Origin: Mytilus californianus
Taxonomy: Eukaryota
DNA: 64,000 bases
Assembly (NCBI RefSeq): GCF_021869535.1
Contig: NW_026262734.1
Location: 6,014,001 to 6,078,000, forward strand
Direction: 5' to 3'
Part shown: in pieces, positions 2,971-21,200 of the stretch
Layout: every line of letters starts with the position of its first letter
Position numbering within the stretch: the first letter of the stretch is position 1
The notes under the pieces: generated by a model
What the model was told of the DNA's origin: nothing
Seen by the model: only the letters and a program-made list of their open reading frames with translations
Database searches by the model: none
Position numbers and translations under genes: made by a program

Positions 2971-3830
2971 GTATTTATCACTAGTAAATACGTACACAGT
3001 AATATGTTGGATATAGATATGTCTATTTGTAAAACGGCAGTGTTAAATAATATTAATGAAGAGATATGTGGAACTAGGAGCTGTAACAACACCACTAACA
3101 ACAACAATACTTTTGAGGGTTACATAGTAAGCTATATAACTAGTCTTCCTTGAGGTCCTCATCTTAGAAAAAGCATACACAAAAAGTCGTTGGAAAAACA
3201 CAATGCAAACATCAATATAAATGACATACATTAGTATAAAAGTCAAGTATAATGATCAATGTTCAATACAACTGCATAAAATGTTATGAAAAAATAAACA
3301 TGAAGTAATAATTAATATTTAATATTTTTCAATTCAATGGTTGATTTATAGTATAAAAATGAAGGTTTTTTTTATCAAATATGAAAATATGATTTATGAT
3401 TTGTAGTCCATTATGTTTGGTAGTATTTTGGAAATGTTGTAAAAGCAATGAGGAATGAGAACATTATTAGCAGGTTTAAGATGATTAAATAAGATAAAAT
3501 ATAAAAGATTCTATGAACCAATATGAAAAGCTATTTAGCCCTTTTTACCCATCTCAAATCTGACTGCAAATGGAGTAAATAGAAATGTCATAAGGAATCC
3601 ACAGAAAGAAAAACATGGAACGAGAAATAAAAAAGTTTGTTTTTGGGGGTTTGGCTGTCTTTGGCACCACTTTTGTGACTCATAGTTCACAAACCATTAT
3701 CAAGAAGCTCATGAGAGCTGGAATAACTCAACTTTTTGTGTAAATCTTGCACCAATGGTTATTTTTTTTTATTTTATGATTTTTAAAGATAATAACAAAA
3801 AATTGCCATATTTTCTTAAAATCTATAATT

Positions 3831-4356
3831 CAGTGACAACAAATCTGTTCTAAGGGGTGTAACTCCTGGAAAAAAAATTGAATCGTAATTTCCTGTCGAT
3901 ATGCACATCTATGTAGTATGTCCTTATTATCTGAAAAGGTTTCATGAAATTCTGTTGTGTGGTTTGAGAGGAGTTGCGATGACAAAAGGTTGCAGTAGTA
4001 TATTGGGCAAATAAGTTCAAAGGGGCGTAACTCCTGGAAAAAAAATTGAATCGTAATTTCCTGTCGATATGCACATCTAAGTAGTATGTCCTTATTATCT
4101 GAAAAGGTTTCATGAAATTCTGTTGTGTGGTTTGAGAGGAGTTGCGATGACAAAAGGTTGCAGTAGTATATTGGGCAAATAAGTTCAAAGGGGCATAACT
4201 CCTGGAAAAAAAATTCAATCATAATTTCCTGTCGATATGCACATCTACGTAGTATGTCCTTATTATCTGAAAAGGTTTCATGAAATTCTGTTGTGTGGTT
4301 TGAGAGGAGTTGCGATGACAAGAAACAGGACTGACGGACTGACGGACGGACGGACA

Positions 4357-4406
<50 letters not shown>

Positions 4407-4408
4407 AA
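3831..4408 (+). mobile_element. Non-autonomous Helentron-associated (HINE / pearl-like) element with 168-bp internal tandem repeats
   Basis: Three 168-bp units (gggg at 3854, 4022, 4190), then a (GACG/GACT)n microsatellite and a terminal palindrome tataccctccgcaactcgttgcgtggggtata. Confidence 0.7.
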
Positions 4409-4677
4409 TACTGTAGATTCATTTATATTCGTGGATAGCAATTTTCGTATATTGAAAAAAACTTGCATTTATGTGGGTACTTGATTGTGTTTTTCCCGAA
4501 GTCTGAATACAGGCCTATAGAAAATTAGTTAATCTTTGAACATTTAAATTTGTGGTTCACCTGTACCTACAAAATCCACGAAAATTGGTATCCAAAGAAT
4601 AATAATGAATTCTCAATACATTGTAAAAGGAAATATTACAAACAAATATTACAAATTAAAATTATGTATGGTAGAAA

Positions 4678-4878
4678 CTACATCCTACAGTATTTCTTTT
4701 CCATTTCTCTCTTTGTAAAGTTTTCCATGTCAATGAGCAAAGAAATAAGAGTCCTTCTTCCATCTCTAGCTAGAATGTTAAAATGATTGCTATATAAAAC
4801 TTCTGCAGTTAACTTTGGTTTACCCAGGCTAATTTGCTGGAAATATTCCTTTGTGCCTCTATAATACACAAGTGTAAC
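4678..4878 (-). CDS. Nuclease-like gene terminal exon 5 (VTLVYYRG...KKYCRM*)
   Basis: ttttattttgttttag| then 66 codons and TAG. Confidence 0.85.
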   Translation of the reverse strand, partial: VTLVYYRGTKEYFQQISLGKPKLTAEVLYSNHFNILARDGRRTLISLLIDMENFTKREMEKKYCRM

Positions 4879-7800
4879 CTAAAACAAAATAAAATTAAAT
4901 TAAATAAATGAATAAAAAATAACCTTTTGGTGTAAAACCTCTCAATCTCAACAATATATCCCCTGAATGGTTAACAAATACACACTAGAGGCTCCCAGGA
5001 GCATAAATTGCTAAAATTGTCAGGTTTATCCAATATCAAGGTTTATCAAACAGTATTTTGTGAAAATTTCGTTCTGATCTTTCTGACTGATAATTTCCTT
5101 TCTCAGCGCAGTAGTGAGAATAGATATTTTAGCTACAAACTAAGGAGGCACATGCTGTTGTCAATGTAAACATCAATGACGTCATAGGCAAAATAGCGAT
5201 AAACAAATTATCATTGGTCAACTTCAGTCAATTGCTTTTCATGTTTTTGATGTGATGACTAATGCGATAAAAATCAATCTTGTGTAGATGATCAACTATA
5301 ATTTATAATTATCCAATATTTTTCCAAATTATTAAAATTGAGGCGAAAGATACCAAAGGGACATTCAAACTCAGAAGTCGAAAATAAACTGACAACTCCA
5401 TGGCAAAAAAAGGAAAAAGACCAAAAGACAAACAACAGTACACAAAACACAACATAGAAAACTAAAGACTGAGCAAAACGAACCCCACCACAAACTGGGG
5501 TGATCTCAGGTGCTCCGGAAGGGTAAGCAGATCCTGCTCCATATGTGGTACCCGTCGTGTTGGTTATGTAAGTACTAACCCACAATGATGTGTTGTGATA
5601 AAGATAATCAAAGTGCTTGTAAGCACTGAAGGGTAAAGATTGCTTTAATTTATCAGTGGGAAGTCAAATTAAACCTTGCATTGGATGTACTACAATTATG
5701 GACAAAGGTAGATAACTCCAATCTTAAAGATTACTTTAACAATGACATCATTGATATTTTTAGAACAGATATTAGATTCCTGCACCTTACACAAGTTATG
5801 TAATTTTCTTGACAAGTTTAACATCATTTTGTAACTTCAATATCTGAGCATATATTTCATTGATAAATTTCTGGAAATGTTCATGGATAGGATGTTTAGA
5901 ATGTTATGATCAATGCATTATATTTTGTGTATCTCAAAAAGTAGTGATAAACCTTGGAAGATTTAGATATCAAGTCAGTACCATAGGGTTTTGATTGCAT
6001 TTTATGCAATCTTTACCCCCAAAAAACACTTCTGAACTCACTCATATGGTAATTCCTAGATCCATTATTTCTGTTGTGTTTTGGGGAAGTCCTAGAGACC
6101 AGCGTCGTCAGTAGTCTACTCAAAAGATGTTTATTTTTCGAGAGCGATTTATTTTCGCAAGTAGAAAAATAAAGCAAATGTAAATCGTGGATCTTTCCTT
6201 ATAAAACTACATCAAGTAAATTTGAAAATCACAAAATAAAATCGCCCCAAAGTAGGATAGAAAGGGCTAATTGCAAAATAAAGTATCCACAAAAATAAGT
6301 TGGTTTAGTGAAGTAAATGTTTTTAAAAATTACAGCACTTGATGTACACTCGATGTAAAAAATGTTTGGTCGTGACTTACCTTTGTTTCTTGAACAAGTA
6401 ATCCATATATTCCTCTAAATCCAAATAATGACTGACCAGACTGGACAACTACTAACATCTCTCCAATGTGTTGAGCTTTAACATGGTCATCTACATGACT
6501 AGCACATTGATGAGGTACTATTGTTCTATTCCTCAAATTGTTAGCCCTTCTTTCTTCATCCTCCTTTCCATATATTCTTTTTGCCTGTAAATGCAAAACA
6601 ATCTCAGACAACCCTTCACTTTATTTCATTTACTTTTTACTGATATGCTTAAAAAGCTAAACATGAGCTCTAATTGGACATACAGACAATTCTTGAGACA
6701 AAATAAGTCATCTTATCATACTCCCTGCAAAACAATTTTTTTTAGGGGGTGGGGGTATATAGGAATCACCTTGTCCTTTTGTCTGTCAGTCTGTCCATCC
6801 ATGAACCTGGGCATGAAGGAATACTATTACTGTCTAAAAATTGGAAGTAAAGATAATTCAAATTATACTCTCAAAGCAGGAGGAATCATTCAATATAGTA
6901 GACCTACTACACATGAGAAACAGACACAATCTCTTAAACTTAATGTTGGTCAATAAACAATTAAAATGATGTCATGATCAGATAAACTGTCATACAAGAC
7001 ATCTTGTGCAAATAAATCAGCATGAAACTTACTAAATTTGGATTTAAGTTATACATGTTATAAATAATTTAAAAATACAAGAGTGCACAAGGTGAAATGC
7101 CTTGCCTGTTTTACTTGTCAATAAATTCATGTGCAAGATATGTAATATAATAGAAAAACAAAGGATATGGGTATCCATCCATTACACAAAATACAAATAT
7201 GAAGGTTTTACTACAAGTATGACATAAACTAACATTTTCAATGTTCTATGAAAATAAGGTCACAGTCAGATGAACCATGTCAGACAGACATGTACACCTT
7301 ACAATCATTCCATACACCAAATATAGCTGACCTTTTGCAGCTTTGCTTATGGTATCTGATACACTGACAAAATTACAAAAACTTGTCATTGACAAATGAA
7401 CCATGAAAATGAGGTCAAGGTCATATGAACCCTGTCTGACAGACATGTACACCTTACAATCCTTCAATACATCAAATATAATTGACCTATTGCTTATAAT
7501 ATTTGAGAAATAGACCAAACCATAAAAACTAAACATTGTCCAATAAACCATGAAATTAAAGTCAAAGTCAGATGAAACCTGTCAGTATGACATGTACACC
7601 TTACAATCATTCAATACAATAAATATAATTGACTTATTGCTTATAGTATCTGGGATACGGACTTGACCATGCAACTTTAACCTTGATCACTGATCCATGA
7701 AATGAGGTCGAGGTCAGGTGAACACTACTGATGGACATGTAGACATTGCAAGGAACCCATATACCAAATATAGTTATACTATTACTCATAATAAGTTTTT

Positions 7801-10800
7801 CACTTTTCAAATAAAAAGCTTCGCCAAGCAGCCTGATACGACCGCAGAGGTCGAACCCTGAACAGTTGGGGCAAGTTTGGACACAATATGAGTTTCTGAC
7901 ACAAAATAAATGTGGTCAAAGATCTTAAAAATTTGAAATGGGACATTTAATTTACCTAGTATGGTCTGAGATCCAAAATCTAACAACGTGGTTAGATTCA
8001 GCATATAAAAAAACACCAAAAATTTAATTTTAGTTGAAATCAAACAAAGTTGAATTTTGGACCCTTCAATCCTCAATATGGACTAATTTGAAAACAGGGC
8101 CCATAATAAAAAATCTAAATGCACAATAACACAATAAGATTCAGCATATCATAGAGCCGCAATAATTCAGTATTTGATGAAATCAAACAAAGTTTAATTT
8201 TGGCCCCTTTGGACTTCAATGTAGACCAATTTAAAATGGGGCCAAATCTACAAAATAGTAATACATATTAGAACCCCCAAAAATTAAAGACTTTAAATTA
8301 ATCCCATTGAAATTGGTAAAAGATTTGTATTCATTTTCAATTGATTTGATTGATTTTGATTTTTGGTGTTTTAACGCCACTTTTCAGCACCGCTTTTGGG
8401 CTATTTCGTGGCGGCCAGTTTTTATTGGTGCAATGGTGGAGGAAGCCGGAGTGCCCAGAGAAAACCAACGACCTTCGATAGGAAAACTGACAATCCTAGT
8501 CAATTAAGATCGGATTCGAGTGCACCCGCACGAGCAGGGTTTAAACTCACAACCTCAGTTTGACTGGCTAGTGATTACAGTAGTAACTACTTAGACCACT
8601 CGGCCACCAAGGTCCCCATTTTCAATTGAAGATTTCTTGCTATTGCGCAATACTGTGCTGTTGAACAATACTTAGTTAATCTGTTATATATAATAATTTA
8701 CACACACTGTTTGGTGTGTATCTCCTACCATATCATTATTTGTTGCTTTTATATATAAATCAGAAATAAACAATGTAAAAGTGGAAAATTTTTGGGGGAA
8801 AAAAACAAAAAATTATGAAAAAAAAATCCAAAAAAAATTCTGGAAACTAGAGACACTTATTTCTTATCGTTTAGGACAATAACCCCCGAAAGTCAATCCC
8901 AGCCTTCCCTTTGTGGTATGGAACCTTGTAGTACAATTTCAGAGAGATCCATACACTTACACCCAAGTTATTGTCCGGAAACTACAAAAATGCTTGTTTT
9001 TGGCCCCTTTTTTTGCCCTGAATTCCTGAAGGTTTGGGGCAATTACCCCCAAACTCAATCCCAGCCTTCCCTTTGTGATATGGAACCTTGTGGTACAATT
9101 TCAGAGAGATCCATACACTTACACAAGTTATTGTCCAGAAACTACAAAAATGCTTCTTTTTGGCCCCAAATTCCTAAACTGTTGGTACCATAACCCCCAA
9201 AATCAATCCCAACCTTCCTTTAGTGGTATTGAACCTTCTGGTGAAATTTCATAGGGATCCATTCACTTAAACTAAAGTTATTGTCTGGAAACCTAATGTG
9301 TCTTTGGACGACGACGACATGATAGCATTATACTAACACAAATTTTTTGCGGTCGTATAAAAAATATAATTTTTTTTTCAAGCAGTCACTGAACCATGAA
9401 AGGACAAGGACAATGGACATATGACAGAAGGAAACTCTGACCCCAGATTGTTATACCTATGTCTAGCATTCTGCAACTCACCCTTTTGTTGCCGGAAAGA
9501 CAATAAATGACTTAATAAAAATCAATGAACTGAATCAAACTTAAACTTGATCTAGAACTATACACCTGTATACCATAAAAGAACAGCCTTCTAATGTCCC
9601 CCACAAAACCATTTATTTGCATGAAAGCCATTACAAGGCGATTTTCAATGTAATTTACATTCAAAGGGGCATAACTCCAGCATAGATGGTTAATCAGTGC
9701 TGATTTTCAAACTTGTCCAAAAGACTGGTGTCAGATATAAACCTTTTGGTAAGTATTGCAGCGAGGACAATTAACTGTTCATACAGTGATATATCTCGCC
9801 TAACGGCAGAAATTCTAAAAAAGACAATCTGATGGACAGCAACATTGCTAGTTAATTCAAAGTCACTGGATGGTGACCTAGGGGGCAGGGCCTTGAAATA
9901 GTCGTCAAACTGATATGTACTGATAGCAATGCAATTTTTACAAAATATCATAGATCTATCACAAGTAGTGTCTATCAAACTGATTTAAGCAAAAAACGTT
10001 ACATAGAAAATTGCTAATTAATTCAGTCACTGGACCATGACCTAGGGGGCAGGGCCTGGAAATAGTTGTCAAACTGATATGAACTGATGGTTATGCAACT
10101 TGATAGAAATATTATAGATCTATCACAAATAGTTCCTATCTTACTGACATATAAGCAGAAAATTTAACAATTGTTGAATTGGACAATGACGATGCCGCCA
10201 GATAAGCAACACCTATGTCTCGCAGGCGAGACAAAAAAGTCGATAAACCAGAACAAAACTTAAACTCTATCTGTAACTCATCAATATACACTTGTTTATC
10301 ATAAATCAATTCAATATGTCAAGTTGTTAAGAAGAAAGTCCTGAAACTGAAGTGTTACAGAATAACAGAAAGACAGAAAGACTGAATGACGGACAAGGGT
10401 AAAATTATATGCCCCAGATAACTTGTGGAGGCATAAAAAGCAATAGTCCATGTAACCAATCTTCTATTGCTTATCATTTTTGCAATTTAAAGTCTATGTC
10501 TACCTTTATCATGTTTATACAAGCTACAAATGCATAAAATGGTAAAATAAAAGAAAGAAGATATTTAAGGGCGACAACTTCTATTGTTAGCCCTCCGACA
10601 ACTTTAGTCATAACTTTTATGTAAACCTACTGCTGAACATTTTTGATGTAGGTTTTTAAAGTTTGAGTCTATCCATTAGGCCAACTAAAATTAATCAGTA
10701 GATTTTCATCCAGATTTTTTTTTTTTAAATGGGGCGGGTGGGAGGATTTTATTTTTTTTTATTTCCTCCTTTACCCTTTTGTGACGTGTTGTTCATATAC

Positions 10801-13800
10801 AAGGGTAATAATAAGCTTATATCATGTATATATAAGGAATTCTACATTATTTTTTGAATTCTTGAATTAATCTTTTTGATTGGCAACCACTGTTTTACAT
10901 GTAATTGCCGCTTTAGAAACCTATTTTTAGTAAATAGCAAAAACGTGGAGAAATTTCTCTTTTAGACTACCTAGATCAAATTTATTTTGCTTTCTAAGCT
11001 ATGATTTGTAACTCTCATAAAACGAAGCATATGCATAGGTATGCAACACAAATATGATGAGATGAAATGGAATTATTGGCGGTTACCGGTAACGGAAATG
11101 AACAAAATCCGGAAATGTTTAAAAATCAAAAAAATCGAGGCGGGCGGGGATGAAAATCTATTGATAAATTTTAATTGGCCTTATAGTTAGAAAATAGCTA
11201 ATACAATAGGTTTCCAAAAAACAACCAAAAACAATTAGTTTCCAAAAAACAACCAATGAAGGGCAATAACTCCTATAACAAGTCATCTGACAATTTTGGA
11301 CATGAAACTTTTAGGAAATTATCAATTGTTGATCAACTTTGCTAATCAAAGTTTTTTGTCTATCTATTATAATATAGCTTTGAGATAATATAATATACAA
11401 ATTGTAAATGTAATATTGGTCAAATTTCATGTTTCAGTTATATATGTTACTTTTTATTTACCAATGTCACATTTATCCCAAGGTATTCCTTATTGCAATT
11501 TTTACATTCTATCTTACCTCAACGACAGCAACAACTTTAGTGACAAAGTGTGATCCATCTGTATCCTTATAAATGCCAAAACCTTTTACTAATGCATCAG
11601 GAGTAGATGTCTTCTGATTAGACTTTAATGAGGAAGATGTGTCTGATCCATCACTGAAGTTATAAATACAGATTAGACTTTAATGAGGAAGATGTGTCTG
11701 GTCCATCACTGAAGTTATAAATACAGATTAGACTTTAATGAGGAAGATGTGTCTGGTCCATCACTGAAGTTATAAATACAGATTAGACTTTAATGAGGAA
11801 GATGTGTCTGTTCCATCACTGAAGTTACAAATACAGATTAGACTTTAATGAGGAAGATGTGTCTGGTCCATCACTAAAGTTATATAAACAGATTAGACTT
11901 TAATGAGGAAGATGTGTCTGGTCCATCACTGAAGTTATAAATACAGATTAGACTTTAATGAGGAAGATGTGTCTGATCCATCACTGAAGTTATAAATACA
12001 GATTAGACTTTAATGGGGAAGATGTGTCTTGTCCATCACTGAAGTTATAAATACAGATTAGACTTTAATGGGGAAGATGTGTCTTGTCCATCACTGAAGT
12101 TACATAAACAGATTAGACTTTAATGAGGAAGATGTGTCTGGTCCATCATTGAAGTTATAAATACAGATTAGACTTTAATGGGGAAGATGTGTCTTGTCCA
12201 TCACTGAAGTTACATAAACAGATTAGACTTTAATGAGGAAGATGTGTCTGGTCCATCACTGAAGTTATATAAACAGATAAGACTTTAATGAGGAAGATGT
12301 GTCTGATCCATCACTGAAGTAATAAATACAGATTAGACTTTAATGAGGAAGATGTGTCTGATTCATCATTGAAGTTATATAAACAGATTAGACTTTAATG
12401 AGGAAGATGTGTCTGATCCATCACTGAAGTAATAAATACAGATTAGACTTTAATGAGGAAGATGTGTCTAATTCATCATTGAAGTTATATAAACAGATTA
12501 GACTTTAATGAGGAAGATGTGTATGGTCCATCACTGAAGTTATATAAACAGATTAGACTTTAATGAAAAAGATGTGTCTGGTCCATCACTGAAGTTATAT
12601 AAACAGATTAGACTTTAATGAGAAAGATGTGTCTGATCCATCACTGAAGTTACAAATACAGATTAGACTTTAATGAGGAAGATGTGTCTGATCCATCACT
12701 GAAGTTATATAAACAGATTAGACTTTAATGAGGAAGATATGTCTGGTCCATCACTGAAGTTATAAATACAGATTAGACTTTAATGAGGAAGATGTGTCTG
12801 GTCCATCACTGAAGTTATAAATACAGATTAGACTTTAATGAGGTGGATGTGTCTGATCCATCACTGAAGTTATAAATACAGATTAGACTTTAATGAGGAA
12901 GATGTGTCTGATCCATCACTGAAGTTATATAAACAGATTAGACTTTAATGAGGAAGATATGTCTGGTCCATCACTGAAGTTATAAATACAGATTAGACTT
13001 TAATGAGGAAGATGTGTCTGGTCCATCACTGAAGTTATAAATACAGATTAGACTTTAATGAGGAAGATGTGTCTGATCCATCACTGAAGTTACATAAACA
13101 GATTAGACTTTAATGAGGAAGATGTGTCTGATCCATCACTGAAGTTACATAAACAGATTAGACTTTAATGAGGAAGATGTGTCTGGTCCATCACTGAAGT
13201 TATATAAACAGATTAGACTTTAATGAGGAAGATGCGTCTGATCCATCACTGAAGTTATATAAACAGATTAGACTTTAATGAGAAAGATGTGTCTGGTCCA
13301 TCACTGAAGTTATATAAACAGATTAGACTTTAATGAGGAAGATGTGTCTGATCCATCACTGAAGTTATAAATACAGATTAGACTTTAATGAGGAAGATGT
13401 GTCTGATCCATCACTAAAGTTATATAAACAGATTAGACTTTAATGAGGAAGATGTGTCTGGTCCATCACTGAAGTTATAAATACAGATTAGACTTTAATG
13501 AGGAAGATGTGTCTGGTCCATCACTGAAGTTATATAAACAGATTAGACTTTAATGAGGAAGATGTGTCTGATCCATCACTGAAGTTATAAATACAGGTTA
13601 GACTTTAATGAGGAAGATGTGTCTGATCCATCACTGAAGTTATTAATACAGATTAGACTTTAATGAGGAAGATGTGTCTGGTCCATCACTGAAGTTATAA
13701 ATACAGATTAGACTTTAATGAGGAAGATGTGTCTGGTCCATCACTAAATACAGATCAGACCTTAATGAGGAAGATGTGTCTGGTCCATCACTGAAGTTAC

Positions 13801-16800
13801 ATAAACAGATTAGACTTTAATGAGGAAGATGTGTCTGATCCATCACTGAAGTTATATCAACAGATTAAACTTTAATGAGGAAGATGTGTCCGATCCATCA
13901 CTGAAGTTACATAAACAGATTAGACTTTAATGAGGAAGATGTGTCTGATCCATCACTGAAGTTATATAAACAGATTAGACTTTAATGAGGAAGATGTGTC
14001 TGGTCCATCACTGAAGTTACATAAACAGATTAGACTTTAATGAGGAAGATGTGTCTGGTCCATCACTGAAGTTATATAAACAAACTTTATAAATTTATTT
14101 TGCTTGCACAATTTCAAAAAGCTATACAAAACTAGAAAATTTATAAGGGTTCCGCGAAACCCAGTGTCTCGCCTACTTTTGCTGTTAATCGAAGGCTCAA
14201 CAAAAATGAGGAAAAAAAATAATAACAATATTCCTTTCAATACTATCTTTTGATTGTAAGAAACCTCTGTCCAAGTTTGGTAAAAATCCAGGATAGTTTA
14301 TGAATCTAATAAATGTTTTAAATCTTTAACTGCAGACTGTATGTAATGTTAACTGGAAGAAAAACTAAGTCCATTTATAAGTAAAATGCGGATAAATAGG
14401 TACAAAATTTTCACAAAATTTCCTTCTAGGTACTAGCTTTTGATCATAAACAAGCTTCTGACCAAGTTTGGTACAAATCCAGGATAGTTTAAGAAAGTTA
14501 TTAAAATTTTAAAAACTTTAACCACAGAGTGAATGTGATGTTTCCTGGCAGAAAACCTAAGTCCATTTATAAGTTAAATACCGAAAAAATGGAATTTTGT
14601 TTTTTAAAAGTTTACTTCTGGATACTATCTTATGATCATAAACAAGCTTCTGTCCAAGTTTGGTAGAAATCCAGGATAGTTTAAGAAAGTTATTAATATT
14701 TTAAAAACTTTAACCACAGAGTGAAAGTAATGTTTCCTGGCAGAAAAACTAAGTCCATTTATAAGTAAAATACGGAAAAACAGGATATTTTTTTTACAAA
14801 ATTAACTTCTGGATACTATCTTATGATCATAAACAAGCTTCTGTCCAAGTTTGGTAGAAATCCAGGATAGTTTAAGAAAGTAATTAAAATTTCAAAAACT
14901 TTAACCACAGAGTGAATATTTGTGGACACCGCTGCTGACGACGGAATGTAGGATCGCTATGTCTCACTTTTTCGACAAAAGTCGAAGGCTCGACAAAAAT
15001 GTGACTTCAAGAAACTTTAAGATACCCCACTGTAGCAACATGTTTCTATTTTTGTAAACATTTATTTTTGCTGTTTTAGAAGAATAAATGGAATGCCTAT
15101 TAAAAACATTAAATTACACTATTACAGCATTGCACTTTAAAAGAACACTGCAATGGTGAAATATCAATGATGAACTACCATAGGTTTTTGAAAAATAGAC
15201 CAAAACACAAAATTTAACCAAAGTCACTCAGGCAAGGTCATTGTGTTGTGATTGAAAATAATCTGAACTGTGTTGCACAATACAACACTATGGTAATGGA
15301 TATGATTGACACACTACCAGATGCTTCTGAGAAATGGCTGCAAGTTTATTTTCAGATGGTCACCATTTTCTTGTCTTCATAAATTGTATTATTATATATT
15401 CTGTTATGGAGTTTGGTTTTGAAGTTTCAAAGTTATTCATCATTTTGATGATGCACCATGTTGGCATCAACCTGATGTGATTTGATATTAACGTATTTCA
15501 AGCCTTCACAAAAACCTGTGAGGTAGGTTTTTTTATGTTGAATCTATGTGTGCTATGCTTATTGTAATGTCTGCTTTAGAAAGTGCTTAATGTGTTGTTT
15601 GCATGTACACAAATGCATATGTTATTTTCAAATATGCTTGTTTAAATTTGGTATTTAACTGTTAAGTGCTTATTACATGACTGTTGTAATGTATACTAAT
15701 GCATCGAAGTATGCTTTAAACAAGGAATTATTTGAATCTGGAATAATTTTGAATTCTCGACAATTGATAACAAATGTATGATGAAAACTAACCCAACTAA
15801 ATAAGGTTAATTCTACTTTCACTGATATTTCAGTATGAACTAACTAACCCCCCTACATTCGGTTAGTATTCATCATACATTTCTTATCAATTTTCCAGAA
15901 TTCAAAATTATTTCAGTTCACATACATTGTTTTTAAGATTAGATTTTTGGTATTTAGTTATATTTATTAAACAATAGAACTGAGACCACTATCTCCAAAC
16001 TTAATTAAATTATAAATTATTCTTTTATCATTGAAATGCTCGGAAAAGTAAACAGTTTCCTTGTTTATAATTGTTATTATATAATATTTTAAAGCTATTA
16101 TATTGTTATTTAATTAGATTACATCCATTAGAATGAAAAGCCTAAATCCTGTAAGTTGGTATCTTTTATCTATTTTATTTACAAAATATTGTTTCTGGTA
16201 ACTTCTTGTGGGCTTTAAACCATTCTTTATGGTAATATGTAGATACATTTTGTATATTGTATATAGATATAGGAAGATGTGGTATGAATGCCAATGAGAC
16301 AACTCTCCATCCAAGTAACAATTTATAAAAGTAAACCATTATAGGTCAAGGTACGGCCTTCAACAGGGAGCATTGGCTCACACCGAACAGCAAGCTATAA
16401 AGGGCCCCAAAAATTACTAATGTAAAACCATTCAAACGGGAAAACCAACGGTCTAATCTATACGTTTTAATGGTACCAAACCTTCTCCCTTTTATGTACA
16501 CATAAGTGTGACTTCCATAGTAAAATAATTTATTTCTGATAACTAGTTTCATTTTGTACAACAATCTTTATATGTGACTTATTATACTTACAAAATCCTT
16601 AATCCACAAATTAGAGCAAACGACATAAATAGTTGGTGGTACTTCCTTTCACTTTTCTTTTCATCATCCAATAAATTCAGTAGGTTATCAGAAAAAAATT
16701 GTAACTTTGGATATAGTCTGAAAATATAAAGGATTACTTATTCTATAGATAGCCAAAGACAGTAAACGAAGAATCAAGTTCTGGATCTTCTTCACAGAAA

Positions 16801-19785
16801 TTAAACTGTACAGTTATAAATAAACTAGCAATTAAATCATTGGAATGCCTTTGTCTGATGCTGTTTAAGGTGTAATACCACCAAATAATAGTATGTCACA
16901 TCCGGTTGCATACGAAAAAGGGTTAAAAAAAATATTCCCTTGAATTTGACAGTTCAATGTATGAAATTAATCTTACATTTCATTGCAGTAAAAAAATTCT
17001 GAGTCATAAACATATATCTTGGGTGTTTCAAAGCACCATTCTTTTTTTTATTTGGTGTTTCTATAAAATATTTTGGAAACTTGAGGTTACATGGATACTA
17101 AAGCTTATAAACAGGAAAGAAAGGGGTGGAAATTTGATTGGTTAATTTCCAGTGATGGTTATTATCTTATATGCGATGAAATGTTTTGTGAAATTTTGTC
17201 TGTAGTACTGGACAGGATAAAACTTTACTCATGCTAAGTATTTCTTTATTTGAAACAAAGATAAATTCTGCACAATTTTTTGAAAAGTGCAAATTTAACA
17301 AAGACTAATAGGGGAAAAGCAATGGTGGTATTACACATTTACACCTCAAGTTCATGTTTAGCATAAAGTTTTAAACTGGTGTTTCATGAAAAGACCTAGA
17401 GTGCATATTCACTGATATGTTTAATACCTTTCTTTTCTTAAATTTTGACAATATTAACACATGATTATGCCAAATTGGTATACTGTAAATTCAGAAAATA
17501 TTGCGAAGTTTTTATTAATGCGAATTATGGGACTGGGTGAGTATCGCTTTAATAAGAACTTGCATTCTGATTCCGATACATATATCTGTATACCAATTTT
17601 CCCAAAACGTCAATAATTTATCTCGCATTTTTGTCCATTCCTAAAAAATCGCAAAAATAAATGCACACAATAATTTCTGAATTTACAGTAGTATTTTTAG
17701 AAGTTGCCATTATCGTCAGACTGTTTTGTTTCCAAGACCTGAAAAGAATTAAAATACATTACAAACATGTTGTTTAGGTCCTGTTTACACCAGTCCAATA
17801 AATTGATCTTTTTTAGATCAAACTACATAAGATCCATCTTTCTTATACATGTTATAGTAATTGTAATCTCCAACCAAGGTCTACATTGTTTGTACCTCCA
17901 GATTCAGAATACAACTAAATAGACCACTTTTTTGGAAAGATCTTCTGTGATCAAATTTTCTTTCAAAAATTTAACTTGAAATCATCTAAGAAAATGAGGT
18001 AAGAATGAAACTTTTCTATCTACAGTGTAAATGCACCGGATTTAAAAAGATTGATCAATGATCTTTCTGTTGCAAAAGAAATTGTGAAATGGTCTTTTTA
18101 ACATGTTTGAAATAGATTCATCTGAGATCAGTTCAATTCTAAACAAGTCTAGGGGGAGGGTTGGGCGCCCGCTAACATGTTTAACCACTTTCTGTATGTG
18201 CCTGTACCAAGTCAGGAGCCTGTAATTCAGTGGTTGTCGTTTGTTGCTGTATATCATATTTATTTTTCGTTCATTATTTTGTACATAAATCAGGCCGTTA
18301 GTTTTCTCGTTTGAATAGTTTTACATTTGTCAATTCAGGGCCTTTAATAGCTGACTATGCGGTATGGGTTTTGCTCATTGTTGAAGGCCATATGATGACC
18401 TATAGTTGTTAATTTCTGTGTCATTTTGGTTTCTTGTGGAGAGTTGTCTCATTGGCAATCATACAACATCTTCTTATTTTTATATAAAAGGGGTCTTACA
18501 TGTATACTTTTACACATTGTGACTTGGATGGAGAGTTGTCTCATTGGCACTCATACCACATCTTCTTATTTCTATATAAAACACATGATACAATGTACAT
18601 GTAATATTCTCAAGCTACATCATACCCATTGAAATTTCAAATAATCACCAAAATAAATCTGAAAGGGTCATGTAGACCTATTGTTTGGAAAAAGTTAAAA
18701 AAAAATATTAAAGGGAGACAACATGGACAACTCGAGTGAAAAATGAACAGTGAGTGACCTCTCAGTGTGATATTCCTGCTTTAAGAGTACAAGTAAAATT
18801 ATTCCCCTTTTGAAATATTTGGACAGCAACCATATTCCTTCATGCACATCTGCAGATAGTAAACTACAATTTTGTAAAGTTTCATCAAAACCTGATAAGC
18901 CAATTAGGAGTTGCACTTGAAAGGCACATGGACAGACTGACAGACAGACTGATTCCTATATCATAGGAGGGGATATAAGAAATGAGCACAAAGATCAGCT
19001 GACAACTTGTATAGTAAAGAATATAAATCTAATAATCATCTGATTCATTGAATAATTCTTAATAGTTCTTACAATGAGCATGTGTTTCTGTACAAAGTTT
19101 TCCTGTCTAGTTGATTTCCATCTTGGTCTTTGAAATGTTCATAGCAACATCCTTTATCTTCTTTCACAAAATATTGATACAACATTGAACTTTCAACGGG
19201 CTTGCTTAATTCGTTGAAATTAACTTTGGCTGTGGCCAATTTATTTATATCTGTAACAACTGTATAGTTGTCTCCATTAAAAAAGTACTTATCAAAAGCA
19301 AAATTGATACATTCTTCAAGTATACGGCTTTTCAAATCTTGGTTTCTTAAAGCTGTGTATACATCACCAAAACCAAGATGAAGCAGAACACTCAGGTCAG
19401 TTGAACCAGTCATAGCGATATTGTAAATACTTTCAACACTAGTGCTTTGCTCAGAAGAATCAACGTTCAAACTGCTTGTATTTGGAGGCAAATTAAGACT
19501 AGACTCTCTTCCCATATTGTCAGTGGATAAATCCGTGGTTTTACTGCATGAATCTGTATAAGATCCCATATCTTTGCTGTTACTGTTAGGCGATGAATGG
19601 GGTTCTGATGGTGGCTCAGGCACTGAGAGGGACGCCGTTCGCTTAGTTTTTGGCTCTATAACATCTTTTCCTTTTAGAATTTGCGCGTTCGGTGCATTGC
19701 TGCTTTCCTCTGATGCTTCTTCATATCCAGAATACTTCCGTTTTATCGTACAAACTCTAGAGGTTGCTCTAACTCGTTCGTCCAT
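4678..19785 (-). CDS. Five-exon gene, 459-aa uncharacterised protein with a candidate C-terminal PD-(D/E)xK restriction-endonuclease-like domain
   Basis: Exons 19785-19073, 16717-16592, 11653-11518, 6584-6381 and 4878-4678 are all GT-AG with matching phases (2,2,0,0). They total 1380 nt with one terminal stop. Spliced motifs: SERKY...TPDALV...VVAVVE|AKR...AQHIGEM...IYGLLVQETK|VTLV. Confidence 0.85.
5340..5575 (+). mobile_element. Dispersed short repeat (aaagataccaaagggacattcaaactc family)
   Basis: Related copies at ~24110-24275 (-) and ~27655-27850 (+). This family is the source of the spurious ...VRxAQSLVFYVV... ORFs. Confidence 0.75.
6381..6584 (-). CDS. Nuclease-like gene exon 4 (AKRIYG...AQHIGEML...VQETK)
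   Basis: catttacag| ... aag|gtaagt; 204 nt, phase 0/0. Confidence 0.85.
7207..7800. mobile_element. Degenerate tandem-repeat-containing element (~150-bp units, acatgtacaccttacaatc core)
   Basis: Core motif recurs at about 7290, 7444, 7591 and 7736. Confidence 0.6.
8341..8617 (-). mobile_element. tRNA-derived SINE, near full length
   Basis: The minus strand starts ggggaccttggtggccgagtgg (A box), has gagtttaaaccc (B-box-like), a conserved body ggccgccacgaaatagcc and an (aatc)n tail. A second copy is at 41854-42066. Confidence 0.8.
8850..9362 (+). mobile_element. HINE-like element with ~3 internal tandem units and a (GAC)n tail
   Basis: aatcccagccttccctttgtggtatggaacctt repeated about 3 times; ends gacgacgacgac...cggtcgtataaaaa. 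Confidence 0.6.
9640..10236 (+). mobile_element. HINE-like element with two internal units and a terminal hairpin
   Basis: gacctagggggcagggc at ~9876 and ~10040; terminal tgtctcgc-ag-gcgagaca. Confidence 0.55.
11518..11653 (-). CDS. Nuclease-like gene exon 3 (DGSDT...TPDALVKGF...VVAVVE)
   Basis: acttcag| ... gag|gtaaga; 136 nt, only one frame open, phase 2/0. Confidence 0.85.
11618..14082 (-). repeat. 55-bp minisatellite (~45 copies) made of the acceptor plus first ~37 nt of nuclease-gene exon 3
   Basis: Minus-strand unit ctgtatttataacttcag|TGATGGACCAGACACATCTTCCTCATTAAAGTCTAAT. The last unit runs directly into the unique remainder of exon 3. Confidence 0.95.
14130..15000 (+). mobile_element. 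HINE-like element with ~4 internal ~190-bp repeats
   Basis: aaacaagcttctgtccaagtttggtagaaatccaggatag repeated. The motif tcgaaggctcRacaaaaat occurs near both ends, with a terminal hairpin. Confidence 0.65.
16592..16717 (-). CDS. Nuclease-like gene exon 2 (LYPKLQFF...SERKYHQLF...GLRI)
   Basis: tttatattttcag| ... tt|gtaagt; 126 nt, open reading frame, phase 2/2. Confidence 0.8.
17481..17690. mobile_element. MITE, 210 bp, with 17-bp terminal inverted repeats
   Basis: tactgtaaattcagaaa ... tttctgaatttacagta. Confidence 0.8.
19073..19785 (-). CDS. Nuclease-like gene exon 1 (MDERVRAT...RNTCS); Ser-rich N-terminus with a KRK basic patch
   Basis: 238-aa ORF whose stop codon overlaps a strong donor tt|gtaaga; phase 2. 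Confidence 0.8.
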
Positions 19786-20239: not shown

Positions 20240-21200
20240 TTAGGTCTTTTTACAGGCATGCATGGTCCTATTAGACCTACAGAAGACGTTTGACACAGTA
20301 GATCACAAGATATTATGTGACAAATTAGAAGTAATTGGGGTTAGATCTATACCTTGGTTTGAGTCATATTTGACAAACAGAAAACAGGTTGTAAGTGCAT
20401 GTAAATGGGGTGATTTCAGAAGTATGTTATATTACATGTGGTGTCCCTCAAGGTAGCATACTGGGTCCACTATTGTTTTTGATCTATGTCAATGATGTTC
20501 AAACTAGCATCGACTCAGATTGTAAAGTTTTGATATATGCAATTTTATTTTCCCATATAGACCCTGGGGTCATCTCGCATAAATTATCCAGAATGCTGGA
20601 ATCATGCCATGATTGGTTAACTGACAATAAATTGTCCCTACATTTGGGAAAGACGGAGAGTATAATTTTTGGTCCTGGTCGAAAACTTCGGTGTTTAATA
20701 CCGGGTGATATTGCTATCTCGTGTAATGGTATTAATATTGAATCCAAAACTTTTGTAAAATATTTGGGAATAATAATTGATCAGTTTCTAACTGGTGATT
20801 TTATTGTCAACTCTAGTGAAAAAAAGTCAATCAAAGGCTTAAATTATTATATAGAAACAAAGAGTGTCTAAATTTTCAATCTAGGAAAACATTGTGCTCT
20901 TCTCTGATTCAATGTCATTTTGACTATGCATGTGCATGCTGGTATGAAGGTATATCAAAACAAATGAAGAATAAACTTCAAGTGGCACAAAATAAGATTG
21001 TGAGATTTATTCTGCAATTACATCCCAGAAAGATTGTGACATATATTGAATTTAAGAAATTGGGCTTTTTAAATATTAGTAATAGAGTCAAACAACTAAG
21101 ACTCAATCATGTTTTCAACATTTTTAACAATATATGCCCAAATTATTTACTACATACTAGTTTTGTTAAAAATGAAACATCTTTCAATACAAGATCTAGT
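20240..21200 (+). mobile_element. 5'-truncated, decayed non-LTR retrotransposon RT fragment (L2/CR1-group, Crack/Daphne-like)
   Basis: LLDLQKTFDTVDH, WFESYLTNRKQ, GVPQGSILGPLLFLIYVND, KYLGIIID and QNKIVRFIL lie across three frames. YADD is reduced to IYA-ILF, so the catalytic Asp pair is missing. Confidence 0.92.

Follow-up and report, generated by a model that had tools for sequence, protein, structure and literature searches.

LOC127711039 of Mytilus californianus: an expressed member of a mussel gene family with a plausible restriction-endonuclease-type domain

Introduction

Does the mussel genome hold an unnamed family of intron-bearing genes whose products fold like restriction endonucleases (REases), and are those products nucleases? 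The question is raised by a locus on the minus strand of a 64,000-nucleotide stretch of the Mytilus californianus assembly GCF_021869535.1 (contig NW_026262734.1, positions 6,014,001 to 6,078,000). This whole stretch is called the window here, and all coordinates refer to it. An earlier note, made from the letters of the window, had read positions 4678-19785 as a hidden five-exon gene encoding a candidate PD-(D/E)xK protein. The locus is LOC127711039, a real, expressed and already annotated gene for an uncharacterized M. californianus protein, and one of at least 21 loci, dispersed in that genome, that form a family with conserved intron positions. That it is a real gene and that its C-terminal domain also has a REase-type fold, the two taken together, is in our judgment slightly favored over the alternatives combined.

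Results

Gene model and annotation

Five exons on the minus strand, spliced in frame at GT-AG junctions, give a product of 459 amino acids. Their lengths of 713, 126, 136, 204 and 201 nucleotides add up to 1380, that is 459 codons and a stop. The introns have four GTAAG donors and four AG acceptors that follow pyrimidine tracts, with phases 2, 2, 0 and 0. The spliced model is identical, residue for residue, to the RefSeq entry [quoted passage not shown] (database protein P0007, 459 aa). The five-exon model of the earlier note was exact, and the peptides that it quoted all lie on the minus strand where it had placed them; its label "hidden" was wrong, because RefSeq carries the same gene model.

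The coding part of exon 1 (19073-19785) specifies residues 1-237 plus two nucleotides, and comprises a Ser-rich variable N-terminus (residues 1-118) and a conserved N-domain (residues 119-237). Exon 2 (16592-16717), with phase 2 at both ends, encodes the helices predicted to precede the core of the C-terminal domain, including E262 of the SERKY segment. Exon 3 (11518-11653) contains P298-D299 at 11601-11596 and a hydrophobic predicted strand that ends with E325 at 11520-11518. Exon 4 (6381-6584) has K327 (6581-6579) close to its start and further encodes a variable, charged loop, the helix with Q363-H364 and a strand whose last residue is the invariant K393. Exon 5, whose coding sequence and stop codon occupy 4678-4878, encodes the last predicted strands and a long C-terminal helix, and with them the invariant residues Y422-S423, N427 and G433-R434.

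Transcription

Evidence for splicing comes from an intron-less 1500-nucleotide Logan contig (L029, run SRR13891796) from a sister Mytilus species, which encodes the relative P0006 at 93% amino acid identity. It aligns colinearly with the window in five blocks. Their junctions, 19073/16717, 16592/11653, ~11518/6584 and 6381/4878, coincide with the exon limits of the model, and the acceptor of exon 3 at 11653 is among them. The same contig extends the untranslated regions to at least 19804 on the 5' side and to at least 4581 on the 3' side.

Mapping of RNA reads from M. californianus itself covered the stretch 6300-11700. In the stranded RNA-seq data of the study that produced the assembly (X21), mean depth is ~4.5 over the two exon-4 bins, 0 in the next two intron bins and 1-3 in the exon-3 bins. 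The first mate is always on the plus strand, as expected of a transcript from the minus strand when the library is stranded in the standard way. Contigs of two further sets, X1 and X2, have matches that end at 6583/6584 and at 11517/11518 and are followed by 23-30 unmatched letters, as in spliced molecules. Splicing of exon 3 to exon 4 in this species was judged from these break points; the junction table, which was filled by intron repeats, omitted the exon 3-4 joint. Unspliced contigs also occur among the RNA-like sets over 6300-11700. Eighteen RNA-like runs, drawn from 12 studies, contain 14-19% of the words in a 2.1-kb stretch, which is about its exonic share. In one X1 contig of 955 nucleotides the exon-3 match spans 11609-11536 only and does not reach the acceptor at 11653; this may reflect the aligner's handling of repeats, a sequence difference in the sample or another exon limit. 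The earlier note had looked to RNA-seq junctions for confirmation; the sister-species transcript contig joins all five exons, and own-species reads lie on exon 4, with none in the adjacent intron bins. Within intron 3, window positions 7000-9600 hold high-copy repeats that are very abundant in the RNA-like contig sets, with summed depths of 10^4 to 10^5.

The intron-2 satellite and flanking sequence

Intron 2 contains a satellite of 45 copies of a 55-bp unit (11616-14082). Each unit consists of the end of the intron with its acceptor AG and the first 38 nucleotides of exon 3, and the true exon-3 acceptor and the 38-nucleotide 5' end of the exon lie within the array. The sister-species mRNA L029 has the same 38 nucleotides; the exonic part is therefore ancestral, and the array arose by amplification of the intron-exon border. 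The exact 18-nucleotide acceptor string occurs 15 times; the 55-nucleotide period is not a multiple of three, and most decoy acceptors would therefore shift the frame.

Just upstream of the first exon, at 20262-20871 on the plus strand, are open frames in which sequence resembling a non-LTR (long terminal repeat) reverse transcriptase was seen by eye. Just downstream of the 3' end of the gene is a 212-aa open reading frame (ORF) with an internally repeated peptide (3830-4468, minus strand), and inside it a 168-bp tandem repeat at 4000-4321, with 1.9 copies and a 97% match.

Conserved positions of the C-terminal domain

Conservation was read from 12 aligned family proteins over residues 238-459. 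The alignments used were checked by eye; MAFFT alignments that mixed full proteins with exon fragments were misaligned and were left out. Invariant in all 12 are D281, P298-D299-A300, and K319, V320, A322 and V323 of the strand that follows, as well as H364, K393, T395, Y422-S423, N427 and G433-R434; Q363 is nearly so. The third intron, of phase 0, separates the codons for E325 and A326; throughout the family, the ExK motif is thus interrupted by an intron.

The LOC127711039 protein has all four canonical positions, E262 on the helix, D299, E325 and K327, and the statement in the earlier note that its putative catalytic residues are intact is correct. The canonical positions are also intact in the M. 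coruscus-like and M. trossulus relatives, and the D-E-K set is therefore kept in two of the three relatives from other Mytilus species; in the third, P0005 of M. edulis, E325 is replaced by K. Among the paralogs, D, E and K are intact in P0014, in P0015 and in the group of genomic copies C99, C136 and C2, with Q for the helix E in the C99 copy. P0016 and P0017 have K at the E325 position and R at the K327 position, and in the P0009-P0013 lineage (and the C1 copy) the helix E is N, the E of ExK is H and its K is E. E325 is K in the C154b copy, and in the C132a copy D299 is G and K327 is R. Of the two motifs whose conservation among homologs the earlier note had made a test of its reading, PD is invariant in the 12 proteins, and ExK is kept in only about half of the lineages, with substitutions in several paralogs and in M. 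edulis.

Predicted fold

Evidence for the fold comes from structure prediction. The ESM Atlas contains a model of exactly this protein with a predicted template-modeling (TM) score of 0.64. The closest Atlas neighbors of residues 235-459 are two mollusc clusters (TM 0.81 and 0.75) and a Mucoromycota cluster (0.66). These are joined by a PDDEXK_12 cluster (0.63), an HSDR_N cluster (0.57/0.60), a cluster with the Crinkler header PF20147 in 17% of its members (0.58), Pkinase_fungal and Pkinase clusters (0.58 and 0.55) and an MmeI_N cluster (0.51). The neighbors that have names represent several families of one superfamily (TM 0.51-0.63), and no other fold classes appear among them. When proteins are compared by language-model features, HSDR_N ranks first among named families for both P0007 and its paralog P0014 (score 0.80), a value that the tool counts as no more than a lead. 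An AlphaFold model made with 24 alignment rows, when compared with the Atlas, retrieves the mollusc clusters, then Mucoromycota, and then an HSDR_N-bearing cluster as the first with a Pfam name (TM 0.35/0.51); this ranking, from a different predictor, is in weak agreement with that of the ESM Atlas model. Two AlphaFold runs, one with eight rows and one with 24, agree on the order helix, helix, short strand, hairpin region, long loop, helix 358-373, two long strands at 384-401, helix, strand and long helix. Such an order of predicted elements is compatible with a REase core in which PD lies on strand 2 and ExK on strand 3.

Several results weigh against this assignment. The mean predicted local distance difference test (pLDDT) value was 38.8 for the eight-row AlphaFold model and 50.8 for the 24-row model, and both were worst in the putative catalytic hairpin. 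Foldseek gave no match of the 24-row model to the Protein Data Bank (PDB) at E<=0.001, and the VIA structural alignment of that model took in the N-terminal helical hairpin only. The 12 family proteins had no Pfam match up to E=10, and P0001 had none at E=1; a profile of the 12 proteins found nothing meaningful among PDB sequences, NCBIfam or PADLOC. PDDEXK_12 (PF20516) likewise had no match in the 12 proteins up to E=10 and none in a six-frame search of the genome, in which control genomes also gave none. HSDR_N (PF04313) matched neither the 12 proteins nor the genome, while eight control genomes matched. In about half of the lineages ExK is altered, with K or H in place of its E and R or E in place of its K, the C132a copy has lost D299, and a charged loop of 30 residues separates strand 3 from the next helix. 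Because the sequence-profile searches and PDB matches are empty, support for the fold comes wholly from predicted models with TM values near 0.5-0.6.

Pfam also returned nothing for single exons, as expected for such short pieces, and a match to DUF2961 in one family member was below the cut-off and was taken as chance.

A rival reading is a real gene with some other alpha/beta fold, in which the PD...ExK pattern and the moderate TM values would be coincidental. A rough estimate is that PD followed by [DE]xK after a hydrophobic run occurs by chance in ~1% of proteins, a TM near 0.5 between predicted models is weak, and the empty profile and PDB searches and the poor AlphaFold models are what such a fold would give. 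Coincidence does not readily explain why unrelated REase-type families (HSDR_N, PDDEXK_12, MmeI_N and the Crinkler- and kinase-linked clusters) recur among the Atlas neighbors to the exclusion of other fold classes, why two predictors both lead to HSDR_N-type clusters, or why PD and the strand preceding ExK are invariant. We think another fold unlikely, and judge a REase-type fold of the C-terminal half to be the better-than-even assignment on these models. Of the REase claim in the earlier note, the part that stands is the company of REase-type predicted structures, including Crinkler- and fungal-kinase-linked ones; the comparison by AlphaFold and Foldseek that it had proposed yielded models too weak to settle the fold and no PDB match, the HSDR_N-bearing Atlas cluster being the nearest that it came to a named family.

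Catalysis

LOC127711039 most likely encodes an intracellular protein with a Ser-rich variable tail, a conserved N-domain and a C-terminal domain of ~200 residues (258-459), the last most likely having the alpha-beta-beta-beta-alpha-beta core of the PD-(D/E)xK superfamily. If so, a divalent metal such as Mg2+ would be coordinated by D299, on strand 2, and by E325-x-K327, on strand 3, and nucleic acid would be bound or cut; the invariant Q363-H364 helix and K393 may aid contact with the substrate. No N-terminal hydrophobic signal or signal peptide is visible by inspection.

The pattern of residues at the catalytic site fits a family of active and inactive members, or one in which catalysis is not the conserved function. 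The second possibility, developed further, is a pseudo-nuclease, in which the REase fold binds nucleic acid or protein partners and catalysis has been lost or is dispensable, in this member too. The freedom of the canonical E and K to vary among paralogs, and the change of E to K in the M. edulis relative, speak for it, as does the fact that strictly invariant residues lie elsewhere (D281, H364, K393, Y422, S423, N427 and R434). Retention of the D-E-K set in this gene, in two relatives from other Mytilus species and in three paralog lineages speaks against it, and nuclease families often mix active and inactive members. A family-wide loss of catalysis that includes this gene seems to us unlikely. 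Judged from its residues, catalytic activity of LOC127711039 itself is possible, with the balance leaning somewhat against it.

A dispersed family of host genes

The 1.65-Gb M. californianus assembly was searched in six frames. Exon 4 as query found nine further loci, and exon 5 found partners a few kilobases away at six of the exon-4 loci. A profile of exon 4 found 21 loci on many contigs, 12 of them strong and nearly all matched across the whole exon. In the paralogs, the donor phase of exon 2, the donor of exon 3 and the acceptors of exons 4 and 5 are placed as in LOC127711039. Three copies, C99 (5.50 Mb), C136 (0.245 Mb) and C2 (13.46 Mb), are nearly identical, with 86-96% DNA identity over exons and introns, and one of them sits on a small 0.97-Mb contig; since the identity extends across the introns, they are recent segmental duplications. 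The related database proteins P0001, P0005, P0006 and P0009-P0017 are all unnamed or "uncharacterized", apart from P0005 (UniProt A0A8S3RV50, M. edulis), which is labeled "EXOC1". Its sequence gives no support to an exocyst subunit, and the label is probably an automatic misnomer. Database searches with the family alignments found no proteins outside Mytilus, and these searches, which need shared five-residue words, are little informative on other molluscs. A literature search found nothing on the LOC127711039 family.

The ratio of nonsynonymous to synonymous substitution rates (dN/dS) was computed by segment against L029, from small counts. It is 1.0 for residues 1-118, 0.19 for residues 119-237 and 0.23 for residues 238-459. 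The structured parts of the protein (residues 119-459) are under purifying selection, with dN/dS ~0.2, and from this pattern the Ser-rich tail evolves freely while the rest is constrained. About 50 residues of the tail are missing from the M. trossulus and M. edulis relatives. The Ser-rich N-terminus to which the earlier note had drawn attention is indeed present, as a fast-evolving and indel-rich segment, and the KRK basic patch is located within it. No paralog of exon 1, including the tail, was found in the genome search. With exon 1 as query, a set of 1.84 billion representative proteins yielded, beyond two Mytilus proteins, only two that are long and repetitive, of which one has bacterial MucBP repeats; their repeated matches to residues 181-227 were taken as compositional noise. 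The N-domain (residues 116-240) had no structural neighbors above TM 0.35.

The family consists of old, intron-bearing host genes and is not a transposon. That LOC127711039 is a transposon-borne or recently captured transposon ORF is scarcely credible: mobile elements are a frequent source of eukaryotic REase domains and a long interspersed nuclear element (LINE) reverse-transcriptase fragment lies just upstream (20262-20871), but the family has few copies (~21 loci), paralogs that are 30-40% identical keep their introns in the same positions and phases, purifying selection is seen on the structured parts, the near-identical copies arose as segmental duplicates, introns included, and no transposase, reverse transcriptase or terminal repeats belong to the unit. 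The earlier note had come to the same view, and copy number, introns, selection and segmental duplication all bear it out.

Discussion

LOC127711039 is at present an annotated, uncharacterized gene with a plausible, unproven fold assignment. Given that fold, we read its family as a new mollusc family of the PD-(D/E)xK superfamily, and this member as possibly an active nuclease. Mussels have large and variable repertoires of defense genes, and for that reason it would be reasonable to study the function of a family in which some catalytic sites are intact and others substituted. A role in defense is speculation, and the results lend no support to nuclear localization or to domestication from a mobile element; the earlier note had suggested a domesticated nuclear nuclease. 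A bolder version would hold that mussels, and perhaps all molluscs, have an expanded intracellular family of Crinkler-type REase toxin-like proteins recruited as host genes, in which the intact members would be nucleases of genome defense or immunity and the paralogs substituted at E or K would be regulators or decoys; we consider this improbable, more so than either a pseudo-nuclease or a different fold.

Within Mytilus, the comparison is with the paralogs and orthologs (P0001, P0005, P0006 and P0009-P0017), which have the same domain order and intron positions at 30-95% identity. The Ser-rich exon-1 tail of LOC127711039 has no paralog, and several of these relatives lack the canonical E or K.

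Among known systems, the REase domains of Crinkler/CR-type effectors and of fungal REase-kinase proteins (Zhang et al. 2016, NAR 44:3513, as summarized in PMC5289972) are eukaryotic, like the mussel protein. With these and with PDDEXK_12 it has in common a predicted fold, clusters that carry PF20516, PF20147 and PF17667 lying at TM 0.55-0.63, and a PD...ExK pattern with a conserved polar helix after it. However, the mussel protein has no hidden Markov model (HMM) match to PF20516 or PF20147, the latter, the ubiquitin-like Crinkler header, having no Pfam match in any full-length family member. It also lacks the header itself and the nucleoside triphosphatase or kinase partner domains, and, in a further difference, its gene is intron-rich and its family was found in Mytilus only, with the Atlas label Mollusca.

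The second comparison is with HSDR_N (PF04313), the nuclease domain of type I restriction R subunits and of small stand-alone cyanobacterial relatives. The mussel protein differs from it in having no HMM match, a helix with Q-H-x-G-E rather than the QxxxY motif of HsdR, a 30-residue charged loop after strand 3, a eukaryotic host and no helicase partner. The likeness lies in the D...ExK pattern followed by a glutamine-bearing helix. Of the Pfam-named neighbors, HSDR_N is the best by language-model features and for the AlphaFold model, and one of the best for the Atlas model. If both fold and activity hold, these genes would represent an unnamed, lineage-expanded animal family of PD-(D/E)xK proteins, unrecognized by current profile libraries, that stands structurally beside the nuclease domains of Crinkler-type effectors and of type I restriction enzymes.

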